A program made the position numbers and the translations under genes. A stretch of DNA of 54,875 nt from Salpingoeca rosetta (taxonomy: Eukaryota; Protista; Choanoflagellata), in assembly GCA_033442325.1 (NCBI GenBank), contig JAWQFM010000004.1, positions 1,104,431-1,159,305 on the forward strand. Reading direction: 5' to 3'. The notes under the pieces were generated by a model. That model was not told the origin of the DNA and did no database searches. It saw only the letters and a program-made list of their open reading frames with translations. Below, one piece after another: positions 4,283-49,612 of this stretch (position 1 is its first letter; each line of letters begins with the position of its first letter).

Positions 4283-6909
<2,627 letters not shown>

Positions 6910-7199: not shown

Positions 7200-10100
7200 A
7201 TGGATGAAGTGGATGTGCGGACAGCAGTTGGGGCGGCTTTGACGGCCGTGGTGGGGGTGTCTCTTCTGTGGCTGATGTTTCTGTTGGGGCGCAGAAAGTC
7301 GCGTGAGCAGTTCCAGCACATCACCACCAACCACCCATCATCACTTCTTCTTGACAGTGTTGTGGCACTCACACAGACACAAAGCAGTGATGAGACTGTG
7401 GAAGAGGACACGAGTGATGGTGAAGCAGTGCGGTGGAGGTGGTGGCAGCGGCAGGACAACCAGCTGGACGTGATGGAGCAGTTGATGCAAGAGGCAGGCT
7501 TGCAACATCACATCAAGGAACTCCTTCGATCTATCGCATGCGATGAACCTGCGAGAGATATAGAGTGTGTTGCAATGTGACTTGCCGGGTTTGCATCATC
7601 ACCGTTGTGCACATGCAAGCAGTCCTGCATGACATCTCCTGCAAGCGGTCCAATCATGTAATCAATGCTGTAGCTCGTCACTGGCCTATTCCGCGCCTTG
7701 CACGTTTGAGAACTGACTGGTTTCAACCAAACGCCTATTTTGCAGGCTGGTCGGAACGACATTGGGAACCAAAGGCGCACAAAGCTTGGCAATTGCATTC
7801 GACAGGAGAAACAACAAAAACATCGAGGTTCTGAGGTGAGCACGCCCACAGGCGTGTTGTGAGTGTTGCGATTCCAAGATATGACGCTTGCGATGTGTTT
7901 CCTGGGCCATCTCCAGTGTGCAGTGTGTGGTGGTTCGTGCCTGTAGTATTCATGTGCGCGCACGCTTGCACGTCCGGACACACGGACACGGACATGGGCA
8001 CACACACACGGACACACATACGCACACACGCACGCACGGACACACACACGCACACCCACACACACACGCACGGACACACACACGCACACACGCACACACA
8101 CACACACACACACGGACACTTGCGTTCCTGTCGTGTTCAGGTTGTACGATAACCTGATTGGATCTGAGGACTGCGTCATGTTGGCTGACGCCTTGCAAGG
8201 ATACACCGATCTACGAGAGCTGCAGTCAGTCAATTGAGTGCAGTGCATACGTCGCAGTCATCCCAAGTGTGATCAGTGAGGGAACAAGGCACGCGACACG
8301 GTGATGGGCTTTCTTGTTGAGATTCTTTCCCGACCACCGGCCATTCTCCTTCTCACGCCTTCGTGTATATTGCCATTGGTGTCACTCTTTGCAGCATTGG
8401 GAACAACCCGATTGGACCTCAAGGCTGTCAAGCGTTGGCCACGGCTCTGCGTGACCACTCAGGACTGCAGGAGCTTCTGTGGGTTTCACCCGTGTGTCAA
8501 AATCATGCGTGGGTCATGCTTGTGATTTGCTCTCCCTGCTTCTCTGGCGCCTTACGTGTTGTTGTGGTGCATCACAAATTCCATCACAATCACCATGCAA
8601 GCGGCTCATCATAACTACATCTCGGCCGCCTCGCCTGCTTTTGTCTTGAATCCACGCGCATGTTCTCTCGACTTAGGCTGATCAACGTTGGCGTTCCTGC
8701 TGCCCACGCAGTTGGTGCAGGGTGGCCAGAAGCACGGGACGTCCAGTGGTACATGTGCGTTCACAGCTGCGGCGCTTCTTCATGCTCTGTCGTGTGTTGT
8801 ACCTGCATTCCTCGCCCTTATGTGGATGAACTCAATTTTCTTTGGTCTGGGCTGGCACTTCTAGGTCGGAGGAACGAGAATTGACACGCGGCGTTGAACG
8901 GGAAAAGCAAGGTAAACCCTCACAAGTTGGTGTTGGTGTTTGTTTTGTGAGCGGCCTTGTACACTGCTCTCATGAGCTCGTGACACGGTAAATACGTGAA
9001 CGTCACTGTGTCCCCCTTGTGTGGGAAAGGAACTGGTCAGGCCCTGTCATGGTCTGCACATGCTGACGAGGACGCACATCCGATCGCTGCCTACACGTTC
9101 TGTTTCAGCTCTGCCTGGGGTGACTTGTTTTAATCGCCTCGGACAATGTGTGCCCACTCAGCAAACCTGCTTCTTCACCGCTCTTGTTTCATGTGCGCTG
9201 CTTCAGGCGACCAGCTCGCAGGACATGCGGATGCTATGAACTCGAAGGACGAAACAATCAGGCAGCTCCGTGAGTGCCGATGCATGCTGCGAATTGCCTG
9301 TGCCCTCTGAGTGACCTCGAGTGACTCTGTGGCACCACTCACACGCCTGTGTTTCATGTGCGCTGCTTCAGGCGACCAGCTCGCAGGACATGCAGATGCT
9401 ATGAGCACGAAGGAAGAAACAATCAGGCAGCTCTGTGAGTGCCGATGCATGCTGCGAATTGCCTGTGCCCTCTGAGTGATCTCGAGTGACTCTGTGGCAC
9501 CACTCACACGCCTGTGTTCTGTGTCTGCTTTGCTTCAGGCGACCAGCTCGCAGAACATGCAGATGCTATGCGCACGAAGGACGAAACAATCAGGCAGCTC
9601 CGTGAGTGCCGATGCATGCTGCGAATTGCCTGTGCCCTCTGAGTGATCTCGAGTGACTCTGTGGCACCGCTCACACGCCTGTGTTTCATCTGCATTGCTT
9701 CAGGCAACCAGCTCGCAGAACATGCAGATGCTATGAGCACGAAGGACGCAACAATCAGGCAGCTCAGTGAGTGCTGATACATGCTGCGAATTGCCTGTGC
9801 CCTCTGAGTGACCTCGAGTGACTCTGTGGCACCACTCACACGCCTGTGTTTCGTCTGCATTGCTTCAGGTGACCAGCTCGCAGAGCATGCAGATGCTATG
9901 CGCACGAAGGACGAAACAATCAGGCGGCTCCGTGAGTGCCGATGCATGCTGCGAATTGCCTGTGCCCTCTGAGTGACCTCGAGTGACTCTGTGGCACCAC
10001 TCACACGCCTGTGTTTCGTCTGCATTGCTTCAGGTGACCAGCTCGCAGAGCATGTAGATGCTATGAGCACGAAGGACGAAACAATCACACAGCTCCGTGA

Positions 10101-11817
10101 GTGCCGATACATGCTGCGAATTGCCTGTGCCCTCTGAGTGATCTCGAGTGACTCTGTGGCACCACTCACACGCCTGTGTTTCGTCTGCATTGCTTCAGAC
10201 GACCAGCTCGCAGAGCATGCAAATGCTGCGAACACGAAGGACGAAACAATCAGGCAGCTCCGTGAGTGCTGATACATGCTGCAAATTGCCTGTTCGCTCT
10301 GAGTGATCTCGAGTGACTCTGTGACATCACTCACACGCCTGTGTTCTGTGTCTGCTTGGTCTGGAAGAACACCAAGTGCAGGAGAGCACGGAAAAGCTTG
10401 CGCGAGCAACAGGTACTTTTTTTTTTTTCATCTCCTCTGCCTACATATTTGCCTGCCTGTGTTGTCCTTGTTCATAATTCTCTCACGCCTGGCTGTGTTT
10501 CCCTTCTTTTCGTAGAGTCCCTCTTCAATCTCGACCTGAATCCAGCCCGCTTCGAGGAGAAGAAACGCGCAAAAGACCACGAAGGCAAGCCCATCAAGGG
10601 CGCATTTGGCAAGCTATATCGCAGCACGTTTGCTGGGCACGACGTGGCGCTGAAGGAAGTTGACGATGTTGAAGAGCGACCACGACTGCAGCACCTGCTG
10701 GAAGCAATGAGCGACACAGCAACTTCAACATCAACAGCAGCACAGTCGCGTGTACCTGACAAGCGTGTGCTGAGAGAGGTGGCCGTCCTTGCCTCACTTC
10801 GCCATCCAAACATCGTGCCTTTTCTCGGGCTGTGTCATGACAGCGATCGCAGCACGCTTGCCTTCGTGCTGAGCTGGGCAGAGAACGGGTCCCTGTACGA
10901 CTACATCCACGTACACAAGAAACACATCAGCAACGTCGAGAAGCTGCGCATCTTGAGCGAGGTGGCGGCTGCGATGGAGTTCCTGCACGCCCACGACGTC
11001 GTGCACCGCGACCTCAAGTCGCCCAACGTGCTGCTGGACGCATCGCTCTCCGCCAAGGTGGCGGATTTCGGCCTGAGCGCGTTCGTGCCAGAATGCGTCT
11101 GTGGTGTCGAAGGTGGTCGGCACACCGCTGTGGGCATCACCGGAGCAGTTGTTGGAGCAGCCATTGCGAGCTGACACGGACGTGTTCTCATTTGGCTGCA
11201 TTATGTGGGAGGTGTGGTTTAACACCAAACCCTGGCACCACGGGGAGTACAGCGGGGAACGCATCTCCGGACGAACGCTTGGCGACAAGTACGACAAACA
11301 TGAGTACCTGCCGCTTGATGTTGAGGAGGGGCGGAAAATGGAAGGCGCATTTAAGGCGCTGCTCCGTGGGTGCTTCCAGTCGAGCGGCAATCGTGTTGGG
11401 TTCTGTCAGTTGCACACGGCCCTGAAGGCGCAACACGACGCTGGCGACCGGCTTTCTCAAATTGGCGAGAAGAAACAGCAGGAGCTGCTTCACGGACCAC
11501 CAGATGCGGTGTGGAAGTTTCCACAGCAGCTGCTGGCCGCGGTGCAAGCGACGGAGCTGTCGACGCGCCAATCCGTCCACATTGCACCACTTCAACCTGA
11601 CGAGGACGCCGTCACTGAGGTTTGTGTTTGTGTGTGTGTGTGGGGGGGGGAGTTGTCATGTGTTCTTCGTGTTCTTTGTGTTCTTCGTGTTCTTTGTGTG
11701 CTTTGTGTGCTCGGTGTGCGTGCGTGCGCGTGTCTTGCTTCTTCACAGTGCACTCAACGACCCCATCTCAGCTTGGTGCTGGCATCTTGCTCTTCGCCCT
11801 TCTCACTTTGGAATCCA

Positions 11818-11887
<70 letters not shown>

Positions 11888-12811
11888 TCACTCGCACACA
11901 CACTCACTCGCACACACACACATATGTGCACCCTGCAGCTCCTTCACGCTGCTGGTGGCCGGACCGCCCAGCAGAATCCGCTTTGCCCTTTCGGCCGCAC
12001 GTTGTGCTGCGTCGCCATCACGTGGTGCGAGCAGAAGCTCGTCGCCTTCAACGGCGCCCTGCACCGCAACAACACCCGCTATCGTGGCCACCTCACCAGC
12101 GCCGGCCACCCGTTTGCGCCCAAATACGCCCACGACACGTTAACGGGCCAGGCAACAGATGCCGAGGAGCGGGCGGTGCTGGAGCGCGTCACCCGTTCTG
12201 GCCGTCCTGGCGTTTACAACGTGCTTGACACGTCGCGCCTGTACAACATGCTTGACGCGAACTGCGTGGACAAAGATCCGCCCATTCGCCTCCAGCGCGT
12301 GTTCCATGGTGTGAGATCCCTTGAGGCCGTTGTTGGCATCCTGGGCGGTGACTTTGCACAACTGCAGACCCAAGGTGCGAAGTTTGGTGCGGGCTGTTAC
12401 TTCACGCCAGACCTTGACTACGCCCTCGCTTACACTTCGCGCTGCCGGCCCAGGCACTCTTCTCCACCTGAACTGCACTGCCTCAAGCTTGAGCCAGGCA
12501 AAGCCTACCGCGTTGTTCTGGCGTGCGATGTCATGTACGGCAACCCGTATCCTGTGACGCACAAGAGCCTTCACCCCACCCGACGACATGACCCGGAACG
12601 GAAATGGCGGTCGTTCCGTGATCAGCCCCTCATCTCCAGACACGACGCTCACGTGGCAGTCATTGATTTCACCAGTGGCGACATTCGACATTCACAGCCG
12701 TTCCACCCACACACGCAGTGGGACCAGGGCGGCAATGTGTCGGCTGCGGAGATCGTAGTGACAGACCCTTCGTGCGTCCTTGTTCGAGCCGTCCTTGTGT
12801 TTGAGGCGTGA
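7200..12811 (+). CDS. Membrane-anchored LRR (RI-like) - coiled coil - TKL-group Ser/Thr kinase - PARP-like ADP-ribosyltransferase fusion; frameshift near 11091
   Basis: Exon 1 has a TM ([25 protein letters not shown]). LRR exons at ~7746 ([18 protein letters not shown]), ~8141 ([18 protein letters not shown]) and ~8395 ([18 protein letters not shown]). Seven 63-nt coiled-coil exons follow. Kinase exon has [23 protein letters not shown], then GTPLWASPE and DVFSFG in a shifted frame. A phase-0 intron 11620-11938 joins a final exon with FHG, GAGCYFT and AEIVV (H-Y-E triad). Confidence 0.85.
9170..10345 (+). repeat. Tandem array of seven ~165-bp exon+intron units (63-nt exon, ~102-nt intron)
   Basis: Exons start at 9207, 9372, 9539, 9704, 9869, 10034 and 10199, each flanked by CTTCAG| and |GTGAGT. 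Consensus peptide is [20 protein letters not shown]. Confidence 0.93.
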
Positions 12812-12937: not shown

Positions 12938-13533
12938 TGCGTGTGCGTGTGCGTGTGCGTGTGCGTGTGTCAATGCTGTAATTTGTAGGTCATTGCTGTG
13001 CGTGCTTTGCATCCTGTCCGCCACTGAAGTTCGTTCATTTCCATCAGTCCTCGTCTGTTCTGCTTGTTTGTTTGTGTGGACACCATTCCCATCTCCACTG
13101 TCCCCGCATACGCTGCTTTTTCGGTGCCACCGCAATCTCTTTTCCATCCCATCCCCTCCCCTCCCTTCACTTTGCTTCGTATTTCTTCTTCCGTCTTTGA
13201 GAATCCACTTCATCTCCATCGCATTTCGTTGACGCGCGCGTTTCTTCCTCTTGTTCCCGTGTTTAGTTGCTTGTCGTCTACCCATAGAATGTGTGGTGTT
13301 TGTTACATGTGGCGTGTTCTGTTTTACTTTGCTTGCCTGGTTTGATTAAACAATGAGTGAGAAGCGATGTCTCATCCCACCACCATGCCAGAACCACACA
13401 AAGTCCTGGTTCAGGATCATTGAACGAAACATGCGTGAGGTTGTCGTTGCGCACTGTTGCCTTTGGCTTGAAAAGTCGTGCAATTCTTTCGCAACTCTTC
13501 CCGACTTCACAAACAACAACCCACTGCAACAAA

Positions 13534-14881
13534 ATGGCGGCGGGTGTCCTCCCTCTCCTCCCACCGCTCCCACAGCTCCATCATGCTGCCGTTTTGTTGG
13601 CTGTGTTCTTCCTGGTTGTGTGCGCGTGCCGCGTCGAGGCTATCGCCACACCACCAACACCAAACAGGGCCAAGCTGGCGCAAGATGACAGCGGCGCTGT
13701 GCACGTCAACTCGAGTGACCCAGCGACCCAGCCCGTGTTCCTGAATGGCGTCAACGTCGTTTCGGAGATGCAAACGCTGCGTGGAACCGTGGTGGCACAG
13801 CAGAGCATCTTGCAGGCGTACCAGTCAACGGTTCAAGCACAGCAGAGCATGATCGCAGCACAGAACTGCACGCTTCAATCCCAGCAGAGCATGATCGCCG
13901 CTCTTCGAGGCAGGGTGTGTGAGGCGACTGCCAGCACATTTGGGCAGCTTGGCTTGTCTTCATACAAGTGGCGTGGCGGGGTTTTGGCCAACAACGGTCT
14001 CATCTATGCGGCACCTCACAACTCACCTTCCGTCCTCATCATCGATCCCAGAACCAGCACCGCTGACACAACCACAATCTCCGGACTCGGACCGGATCCA
14101 GCCAAGTGGGCGGGTGCCGTGCTGGCACACAACGGCCTCATCTACATGTTCCCATCAAACAGGGAGACGATGCTCATTATCGACCCCGACACCAATACGG
14201 CTGACACCACAAGCATCCACTCGCTTGGCTCGACGAACAGCAAGTGGCTGAGTGGTGTGGTGGCTGACAACAGCCTCATCTTCGGTATTCCATTCGCTGC
14301 GGGCTCTGTGCTGATCATTGATCCCAACACCAACACAGCCGACACCACAACATTGGCTGGGCTGTCGACCCAGGATGCCAAATGGTATGGCGGAGTGCAA
14401 GCAGACAACGGGCTGATCTACTGCATCCCATTGGCCGCATCTTCCGTCCTCATCATCAATCCAGAGTCCTTCACAATGGACCTCACAACCATCAGTGGCT
14501 TCAGTGCAAGCGCCAAGTGGTATGTATGGGGGCGTGCTTGCGCAAAATGGGCTCATCTACACCATCCCATACAGTTCCACGACCACACTCGTCATCAACC
14601 CGACCACCAACACTGCAGAAACCCTCGCCGTGCCCGATTCCGCGGGTTCAGGAAAGTGGGTCGGCGGTGTGCTGGCACCCAACGCCAACATTATCGGCAT
14701 CCCACACGGCTCACCATCAGTCCTTGTCCTCGATCCAGCCACCAACGCAACCGACACAACAACCAGCACCAACTTTGGCGGATCTTCCGAGTGGTTCGAT
14801 GGCGTGCTCGCTGACAATGGCCTTGTCTATGGCATTCCATACACGGCAGATGCAGTGCTCGTCATCGACCCCGGGTGCTGA
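13534..14881 (+). CDS. Secreted, intronless 7-repeat beta-propeller protein, paralog of 752..2067; frameshift from a 4-bp TATG duplication near 14521
   Basis: Signal peptide, then QDDSGAVHVNSSDPATQPVFLNGVNV, heptad repeats (V.AQQS..), and seven KW.GGV.A.NGLIY..P repeats across ORFs 13357..14814 and 14495..14881. Ends VIDPGC*. Confidence 0.85.
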
Positions 14882-48228: not shown

Positions 48229-49612
48229 ACACGAACGCCTTCACCACCTCCACAACCACGGACACCTTCACCCCCTCCTCCACAACCACGGACACCTTCA
48301 CCCCCACCTCCACAACCACGGACACCTTCGCCTCCGCCTCCACAACCACGAACGCCTTCCCCGCCTCCACAACCACGGACACCTTCACCTCCGCCTCCAC
48401 AACCACGGACACCTTCACCCCCACCTCCACAACCACGGACACCTTCGCCTCCGCCTCCACAGCCACGGACACCTTCACCTCCGCCTCCACAGCCACGGAC
48501 ACCTTCACCTACGCCTCCACAACCACGGACACCTTCTCCGCCTCCACAACCACGGACACCTTCGCCTCCGCCTCCACAACCACGAACGCCTTCCCCGCCT
48601 CCACAACCACGTCACCGTCTTCTGCTCCTTCCACAGCATCAACATCATCTACCGCAACTTNNNNNNNNNNNNNNNNNNNNNNNNNNNNNNNNNNNNNNNN
48701 NNNNNNNNNNNNNNNNNNNNNNNNNNNNNNNNNNNNNNNNNNNNNNNNNNNNNNNNNNNNNNNNNNNNNNNNNNNNNNNNNNNNNNNNNNNNNNNNNNNN
48801 NNNNNNNNNNNNNNNNNNNNNNNNNNNNNNNNNNNNNNNNNNNNNNNNNNNNNNNNNNNNNNNNNNNNNNNNNNNNNNNNNNNNNNNNNNNNNNNNNNNN
48901 NNNNNNNNNNNNNNNNNNNNNNNNNNNNNNNNNNNNNNNNNNNNNNNNNNNNNNNNNNNNNNNNNNNNNNNNNNNNNNNNNNNNNNNNNNNNNNNNNNNN
49001 NNNNNNNNNNNNNNNNNNNNNNNNNNNNNNNNNNNNNNNNNNNNNNNNNNNNNNNNNNNNNNNNNNNNNNNNNACCACAACCACGGACACCTTCACCACC
49101 GCCTCCACAGCCACAGCCACGAACACCTTCACCACCGCCACAATCACCACCAACCCCGCCTCCACAACCACGGACACCTTCACCACCTCCACAACCACAA
49201 CCACGAACGCCTTCACCGCCTCCACAATCACCACGAACCCCGCCTCCACAACCACGGACACCTTCACCTCCGCCTCCACAACCTCAGACACCTTCACCTA
49301 CGCCTCCACAGCCACGGACACCTTCGCCTCCGCCTCCACAACCTCAGACACCTTCACCTACGCCTCCACAACCACGGACACCTTCACCTCCGCCTCCACA
49401 ACCACGGACACCTTCACCTCCACCTCCACAACCACGGACACCTTCACCTCCACCTCCACAACCACGGACACCTTCACCTCCGCCTCCACAGCCACGGACA
49501 CCTTCCCCGCCTCCACAATCACCACGCCCTCCACCTCCACAGCCACGGACACCTTCCCCGCCTCCACCTCCACAGCCACGAACACCTTCATCACCTCCAC
49601 AACCACCACGAG
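48229..49612 (+). repeat. Coding 27-30-bp tandem repeat encoding PRTPSPPPPQ
   Basis: ccacaaccacggacaccttcacctccgcct-type units on both sides of the N gap. Confidence 0.95.
48661..49073. other. Assembly gap (N run)
   Basis: Run of n characters. Confidence 1.

Follow-up and report, generated by a model that had tools for sequence, protein, structure and literature searches.

A Salpingoeca rosetta gene joining leucine-rich repeats, a coiled coil and a TKL kinase to a predicted PARP-type ADP-ribosyltransferase domain, in a copy that is most likely broken

The gene and its modules

Positions 7200-12811 of the window (the whole stretch of Salpingoeca rosetta DNA that was analyzed, 54,875 nt of contig JAWQFM010000004.1) hold one plus-strand gene. 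It belongs to a choanoflagellate family in which a head of leucine-rich repeats (LRRs) or ankyrin repeats is followed by a coiled coil, a protein kinase of the TKL type and a C-terminal ADP-ribosyltransferase (ART) domain, and it is already annotated, as a kinase only. The locus corresponds exon by exon to the public S. rosetta protein XP_004996223.1 (978 aa, here P0029); a second public isoform, XP_004996222.1 (778 aa, P0012), shares its name, "serine/threonine protein kinase", and in both the ART domain is unlabelled. S. rosetta proteins retrieved by word search and cluster look-up were 98-100% identical to the window, and an exon model derived by hand agreed with P0029. An earlier note, made from the DNA letters alone, had placed five modules in a single gene, and that arrangement holds for the public model as well as for the paralogues. 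The family represents a PARP-fold ART in an undescribed partnership, and the window locus is most likely a broken member of it. Taken jointly, the identity of the gene, the fold of its ART domain and the broken state of this copy form a statement that we regard as probable. The genomic comparisons draw on one assembly of S. rosetta, and all structures are predictions. Exons were searched singly, the full-length sequences used were public models only, and copy numbers from the genome search are lower bounds, with the best candidates alone scored.

The first exon, which has an alternative donor at 7577, encodes a transmembrane (TM) segment at residues 8-31 (approximately 7221-7292; Kyte-Doolittle 2.25) followed directly by the basic sequence RRKSR, as the earlier note had described. 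The LRR head is encoded by four exons of 72-90 nt, each carrying one LRR of the ribonuclease inhibitor (RI) type and all in phase 2; the pattern L..L.L..N.IG..G, in repeats of about 28 residues, is visible in three of them. An AlphaFold2 (AF2) model of P0029 contains four strand/helix units at residues 120-222, in line with the proposed RI-like exons of matching phase. P0029 scored 22.3 bits against Pfam LRR_6, slightly below the cut-off of 23.4, whereas an LRR array in the paralogue P0006 that shares 55-68% identity with the window LRR exons reaches 62.7 bits with the same model.

The LRRs lead into a tandem array in which a 63-nt exon and a 102-nt intron were amplified together as a unit, giving seven units in the window and two in the closest copy of the gene (L011:6068-6426). 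All seven exons lie in phase 1-1, read open throughout and are bounded by an AG acceptor and a GTGAGT donor. Each encodes 21 residues, or three heptads, and the strict seven-residue spacing of Leu, Met and Ile fits a coiled coil. The RefSeq model uses four of the seven exons, and AF2 folded the corresponding residues (262-334) as a single continuous helix of 73 residues, so the long coiled coil of the earlier note stands. The use of four exons in the public mRNA models possibly reflects repeats collapsed during transcript assembly. A small exon that we had considered at about 10368-10411 was rejected: it is absent from both public isoforms, where a phase-1 junction links the last repeat exon straight to the kinase exon. 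The introns of the gene are of the GT-AG type and rich in (CA)n. In the whole-protein AF2 model of P0029, the predicted local distance difference test (pLDDT) score was 65, with the LRR units, the helix, the kinase and the ART domain in that order.

An N-terminal hydrophobic segment is absent from all 18 other family proteins examined, two of which contain a weak internal one. Among the proteins compared, the TM anchor is a peculiarity of a young branch of three copies, described below; it does not mark the family as a whole as receptors. All other domains of the window protein are most likely cytosolic, as had been proposed from the basic residues after the TM, because the LRRs are of the RI type, there is no second TM segment, the relatives lack a TM segment and the flanking charges fit an N-out/C-in orientation.

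Table 1. Positions of the exons and other features of the gene (window coordinates)
Feature	Position	Strand	Remarks
Exon 1	7200..7564	+	ATG at 7200; TM, RRKSR, acidic linker, conserved N-terminal helix
LRR exon 1	7746..7835	+	RI-type, phase 2
LRR exon 2	8141..8224	+	RI-type, 84 nt, phase 2
LRR exon 3	8395..8478	+	RI-type, 84 nt, phase 2
Fourth LRR, degenerate, or cap exon	8677..8748	+	phase 2; alternative donor at 8755
Charged linker exon	8865..8911	+	47 nt; leads into coiled coil
Tandem array	9185..10345	+	seven 165-bp units (63-nt exon + 102-nt intron), 93% conserved between units
Coiled-coil exons	9207-9269, 9372-9434, 9539-9601, 9704-9766, 9869-9931, 10034-10096, 10199-10261	+	
Kinase exon, single	10516..11619	+	1104 nt; TKL type plus linker; VALK, HRDLK, DFG in frame 0; from about 11092 in frame +1
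34-nt GT..AG stretch	11058..11091	+	taken as intron by public models; removes 12 codons holding DFG
2-bp deletion site	11089..11091	+	relative to all paralogues compared
Last intron	11620..11938	+	phase 0; contains (AC)n
ART exon	11939..12811	+	873 nt; 290 codons + TGA; predicted PARP-type fold
Triad codons	His123 12305-12307, Tyr154 12398-12400, Glu271 12749-12751	+	

The predicted fold of the C-terminal domain

The last exon had been proposed to encode an ART with a His-Tyr-Glu (H-Y-E) triad, a proposal to be checked with HMMER and AlphaFold. The fold predicted here is that of a PARP catalytic domain. An AF2 model of the domain, built from an alignment of 21 paralogues, had a pLDDT of 84.8 and a predicted template modelling score of 0.88. 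Searched with Foldseek, this model gave 272 matches at E ≤ 0.001, and all 40 of those listed were PARPs; VIA-align returned 378 chains at Z ≥ 8, with PARPs accounting for all 50 listed. The alignment with PARP14 had a Z of 14.2 and a root mean square deviation (rmsd) of 2.4 Å over 155 of 180 residues, and human PARP14, PARP10, PARP12, PARP15 and tankyrase all resemble the predicted fold (Z 13-14, rmsd 2.4-2.9 Å, approximately 155 residues). At the sequence level, the motifs FHG, GCYFT and AEIVV are present and conserved. In HMMER comparisons, the FHG and G-x-YF motifs align with the His and Tyr sites of PARP13, PARP12 and PARP16, and the His-Gly and Gly-x-Tyr-Phe motifs of PARP14, PARP10, PARP12 and PARP15 align with the ART of the family. 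All 21 copies in the paralogue alignment have H123 and Y154, and E271 is retained in 20 of 21. The C-terminal exon is predicted from these data to adopt a PARP-type ART fold with a putative H-Y-E triad conserved across the family.

The assignment of the third residue depends on the predicted fold. E271 lies in the strand formed by residues 268-274, at the start of the penultimate strand and 19 residues before the last aligned residue. This offset equals, in the VIA-align ranges, that of the residues we take to be the third members of the triad in TNKS2 (E1138), PARP10 (I987) and PARP14 (L1782). The position supports, but does not prove, the equivalence of E271 to the catalytic Glu of PARPs.

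Two results weigh against a PARP assignment. A profile of the C-terminal 110 residues of the domain (A3) retrieved no PARP from the PDB, only chance WD40 matches at an E of about 0.4. In addition, the Pfam PARP model (PF00644) remained below its gathering score of 26.7 bits throughout the close family (16-23 bits), with scores of 22.8 for the exon, 20.0 for P0029 and 16-21 for the paralogues; the domain is not shown in public records as a consequence. The more distant relatives P0048 and P0060 do exceed the cut-off. Such divergence would also be expected if the domain were a non-catalytic pseudo-PARP that binds NAD+, ADP-ribose or protein in the manner of PARP13/ZAP, leaving the kinase as the sole enzyme of the family. 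A PDB search with a profile of the 21 ART paralogues points the same way, to the extent that it found PARPs only, all weakly, and the best of them was the inactive PARP13 (E 0.012). PARP13 itself, however, has no His at the aligned position, whereas the family keeps His and Tyr without exception and Glu in all but one copy, together with the Gly that follows the His and a second aromatic residue. This conservation persists among copies that are just 47-60% identical. We therefore consider a pseudo-PARP unlikely.

The domain differs from human PARPs in several respects. It is only 12-17% identical to them, below the Pfam PARP cut-off, and it has an extra conserved N-terminal extension of about 55 residues. 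PARP10, PARP12, PARP14 and PARP15 carry a hydrophobic third triad residue, in contrast to the putative H-Y-E of the family. The macro, WWE, zinc-finger and SAM partners of human PARPs are missing, and a protein kinase is fused instead. The overall layout resembles that of tankyrase, in which a repeat head and an oligomerizing element also precede an H-Y-E ART. Surveys of PARPs list no kinase fusion (PMC4245714, PMC2964712). As the earlier note had stated, this is not an architecture of the animal PARP family.

The kinase exon, the 34-nt stretch and the three-copy branch

The kinase exon matches the Pfam models Pkinase and PK_Tyr_Ser-Thr with E values of 1e-28 to 1e-32, and the closest named relatives in the PDB are the TKL kinases CTR1, RAF and TNNI3K. 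The earlier note had described a kinase with intact VALK, HRD and DFG motifs. The motifs are indeed present in the DNA, but a 2-bp deletion places DFG (frame 0) and SPE (frame +1) in different frames. The window reads CCAGAATG where both of its closest copies, L011 and L043 (95-97% identical), read CCAGAGAATG, and the alignment with L011, L014 and L012 likewise revealed 2 bp missing from the window. Downstream of DFG, the sequence GTPLWASPE, the C-lobe, the linker and the phase-0 join to the ART exon all lie in frame +1. Of 17 kinase-bearing loci, 15 keep the two halves of the kinase in the same frame, 14 of these without any stop, and the catalytic Lys, HRD, DFG and APE fall in a single frame in 14 of 17 paralogues; neither is true of the window. 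Translation straight through in frame 0 reaches a stop at 11172-11174, 27 codons past the frameshift, giving a product with no kinase C-lobe and no ART. The window copy has therefore most likely been disabled recently and is a young pseudogene.

The public models escape the frameshift by treating 34 nt as an intron. True splicing of these 34 nt, the reading that RefSeq adopts, would yield a pseudokinase scaffold that lacks DFG, is anchored in the membrane and keeps a working ART. In favor of it are the GT..AG ends, the preceding AAG and the exact restoration of the frame; both public isoforms use the stretch, and the models were refined with RNA sequencing data (PMC4054682). On the other hand, the remaining introns of the gene measure 102 nt or more, at least three times as much, and the stretch begins with the donor GTGGCG, as against the GTGAGT-type donors found elsewhere in the gene. 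The equivalent of 11058-11091 is conserved coding sequence containing DFG in every paralogue. The same pipeline also patched two unrelated lesions. In L020 (G000:C23:782727-792500, minus strand), one base is missing inside the DFG codons near position 2600, and the public model P0002 covers the lesion with a 29-nt "intron" that removes DFG. In L011, the public model skips 33 codons at a nonsense codon. Given the length of the stretch, its atypical donor, the coding conservation in the paralogues and these like patches, the 34-nt intron is probably an annotation patch, and a genuine intron at this position seems very improbable. A second GT..AG stretch, of 28 nt at 11085-11112, was also considered as a restorer of the frame and was rejected as too short; once it is removed, about 15 residues would remain of the activation loop. 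More generally, RefSeq micro-introns of 29-34 nt may be a sign of frameshifts in S. rosetta gene models.

The window gene and L011 (at 1.82 Mb of C4, G000:C4:1813236-1823108; XP_004996409.1) are part of a segmental duplication that spans at least 8 kb, at approximately 95% DNA identity. A third copy, L043 (at 2.20 Mb of C4, G000:C4:2201000-2210999), shares the TM exon, at 98-99% identity, and also the LRRs, repeats and kinase. The first half of the L043 kinase is 100% identical as protein, and the frame is kept across its junction. L043 lies between runs of N (1-507, 4660-4759 and 8118-10000 of the locus). At first sight it resembled an ART-less truncation, but the copy runs into an assembly gap and its 3' end is not in the assembly. 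These three TM-anchored copies on one scaffold form a young branch that gained an N-terminal membrane anchor. No lesion within it is shared between copies. The 2-bp deletion occurs in the window only, and L011 alone has a nonsense codon in the kinase-ART linker (L011:7524, equivalent to window 11458), where TAA replaces the CAA of the window and L043.

Two observations count against a disabled window copy. The deletion is known from one assembly, in a part of it where the gene exists as three near-identical copies and the scaffold has gaps. Moreover, comparison of the window copy with L011 indicated purifying selection on the ART and on the first kinase half since the two copies split: the proportions of nonsynonymous (pN) and synonymous (pS) differences were 0.012 and 0.056 in the ART domain (Fisher p 0.0008) and 0.002 and 0.029 in the first kinase half (p 0.013). 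With such selection acting since the duplication, the lesion would have to be either very recent or not disabling, and the breaks are accordingly dated as recent. Both observations would also be accommodated by an assembly or consensus error, in which case the gene would be intact and would encode an active TM-LRR-coiled coil-kinase-ART protein like its paralogues; the copies of the duplication are 94-97% identical, with N gaps nearby. Neither close paralogue has the deletion, however, so mixing of their reads would not produce it. Homopolymers are the usual source of 454 errors, and the deletion site is not a homopolymer. The assembly combined Sanger with 454 reads at 33x coverage (PMC4054682). 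Two other copies also have private lesions (the nonsense codon of L011 and the 1-bp deletion of L020), as would fit birth-and-death decay of the family. An assembly error thus has a small chance of explaining the gap, and a recent loss of function in the window copy remains the preferred reading.

Two further features of the window were recorded. Just downstream of the gene, positions 13357-14811 (plus strand) form an open frame of 485 codons with repeats of about 47 residues and matches to DUF5074 (E 2e-9) and DUF6923; this frame begins within the part of the window that is duplicated in L011. A run of N, from a gap in the assembly or from sequence withheld, occupies 48661-49073, and the GC content falls to 0.39 around it.

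The family, its relatives and a possible role

Searching the genome with the ART exon gave 24 matches, none with an internal stop, and the kinase halves were found directly upstream of the ART, in the same order, in 17 of the loci fetched. The family comprises at least 22 ART exons and at least 17 loci that pair a kinase with an ART. The architecture had been called unusual, and this holds relative to animal PARPs, but within the S. rosetta genome it is not unusual. The shortest LRR heads have 4 LRR exons, the longest at least 14. The ART paralogues are filed publicly as kinases or hypothetical proteins. They are scattered over at least 13 scaffolds, so the adjacency of the window gene to a TRPM2-like ADP-ribose-gated channel is probably coincidental. 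In one paralogue, PTSG_11903 (P0031; L027, G000:C4:884518-894288), the same ART ends a protein of 1728 aa with the order LRR-Roc-COR-A-(weak TIR)-ART, in which the TIR match scored 25.8 bits, below the cut-off of 28.

A HMMER search with the ART profile returned 648 proteins at E ≤ 0.001, 23 of them at E ≤ 1e-30. The named close relatives that were checked come from S. rosetta, from Microstomoeca roanoka (ankyrin-kinase-ART and ankyrin-ART) and from marine metagenome contigs. More distant matches include kinase-ART proteins of Didymoeca costata, a WD40-kinase-ART protein of Apiculatamorpha, a Cryptomonas protein and a SidE_PDE-kinase-PARP protein of Paulinella chromatophora (P0048/P0170, from the EukProt transcriptome), whose phosphodiesterase (PDE) match has an E of 1e-29 and whose PARP match is above the Pfam cut-off. 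The pairing of PDE and ART in the latter recalls the SidE enzymes of Legionella. Heads are swapped between LRR, ankyrin and WD40 among the relatives. A kinase was present in 23 of 140 further representatives of the ART relatives, which, together with the fusions in the distant tail, indicates that kinase-to-PARP-type fusions recur in protists and are not unique to the window gene.

The nearest choanoflagellate counterparts in the literature are the "Kinase TLRs" and "Kinase TIRs", choanoflagellate-specific single chains that combine LRRs, a kinase and a C-terminal TIR and have been proposed to provide streamlined sensing (Richter et al. 2018, PMC6040629); PARPs and ADP-ribosylation are not mentioned in that study. 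As in those proteins, the LRRs and kinase of the present family are joined directly to a C-terminal, putatively NAD+-using domain of an immune type. The known chains, however, end in a TIR and have extracellular LRRs (LRR-TM-kinase-TIR), whereas this family has a PARP-type ART, cytosolic RI-type LRRs and a coiled coil before the kinase. ROCO and LRRK2-type TKL kinases are likewise large cytosolic proteins in which an LRR or ankyrin head comes with a TKL-type kinase, but they are not known to carry an ART, and Pfam detected neither a Roc-COR GTPase nor WD40 repeats in the window gene; Roc and COR are absent from P0029 and, among the ART paralogues, present only in P0031. The family also shares with NLR and STAND proteins variable arrays of RI-type LRRs, an oligomerization element, a terminal effector enzyme, lineage-specific expansion to many members, and pseudogenes. 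No NACHT/NB-ARC NTPase or death-fold domain was found by Pfam in P0029 or its paralogues, and the resemblance is one of logic, not of membership. Searches of the literature by accession and keyword found nothing on an LRR-kinase-ART architecture, which, with incomplete coverage, is weak evidence of its absence.

From the order of the modules, a mechanism can be proposed for the intact members. The LRR or ankyrin head would bind a ligand or partner, and the coiled coil would gather the kinases for trans-phosphorylation. The kinase might then switch on, or target, the C-terminal ART, which in turn would ADP-ribosylate substrates or consume NAD+. In the three-copy branch, the TM segment may tether this cytosolic machine to the membrane, N-out/C-in as judged by the flanking charges.

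The purpose of such a machine is less certain. An immune-type sensor-effector role is suggested by the expansion of the family, its variable LRR and ankyrin heads, its pseudogenes and the ROCO/TIR architecture of its sister protein; we regard this role as a tentative possibility that falls somewhat short of even chances. The family might instead serve ordinary signaling related to life stage, the cytoskeleton or stress. TKL kinases with LRR or ankyrin heads (the LRRK/ROCO, MLK and ILK types) are mostly signaling proteins, and the lack of Pfam-detectable NACHT/NB-ARC and death-fold domains would suit such a role. The more than 20 copies, their range of LRR numbers, the presence of pseudogenes, the swapping of LRR, ankyrin and WD40 heads and the use of the same ART at the end of an LRR-Roc-COR-(weak TIR) protein speak against it, such traits being typical of immune-receptor families. 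Ordinary signaling is a serious alternative that likewise falls short of even chances. A more specific version of the immune-type role, in which the kinase-ART family constitutes a premetazoan, NLR-like cytosolic immune repertoire whose heads act through coiled-coil oligomers and a kinase on an H-Y-E ART effector, is rather unlikely as a full account. If it were true, the ART would modify invader or host targets or deplete NAD+, in parallel to the TIR-ending "Kinase TLRs"; PARP-based immunity would predate animals; and the TM-anchored trio would be a young, already decaying branch of the repertoire.

More than 20 genes in which LRR or ankyrin heads are joined, via a kinase, to a PARP-type enzyme are hidden behind the annotation "TKL protein kinase". 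The window copy is most likely broken, public models mask breaks of this kind with micro-introns of 29-34 nt, and the intact paralogues, among them XP_004990804.1 and P0006, are better suited for experiments. Should the kinase control an active ART, the family would provide a new coupling of phosphorylation to ADP-ribosylation, as well as a candidate for an early kind of innate immunity based on PARPs.

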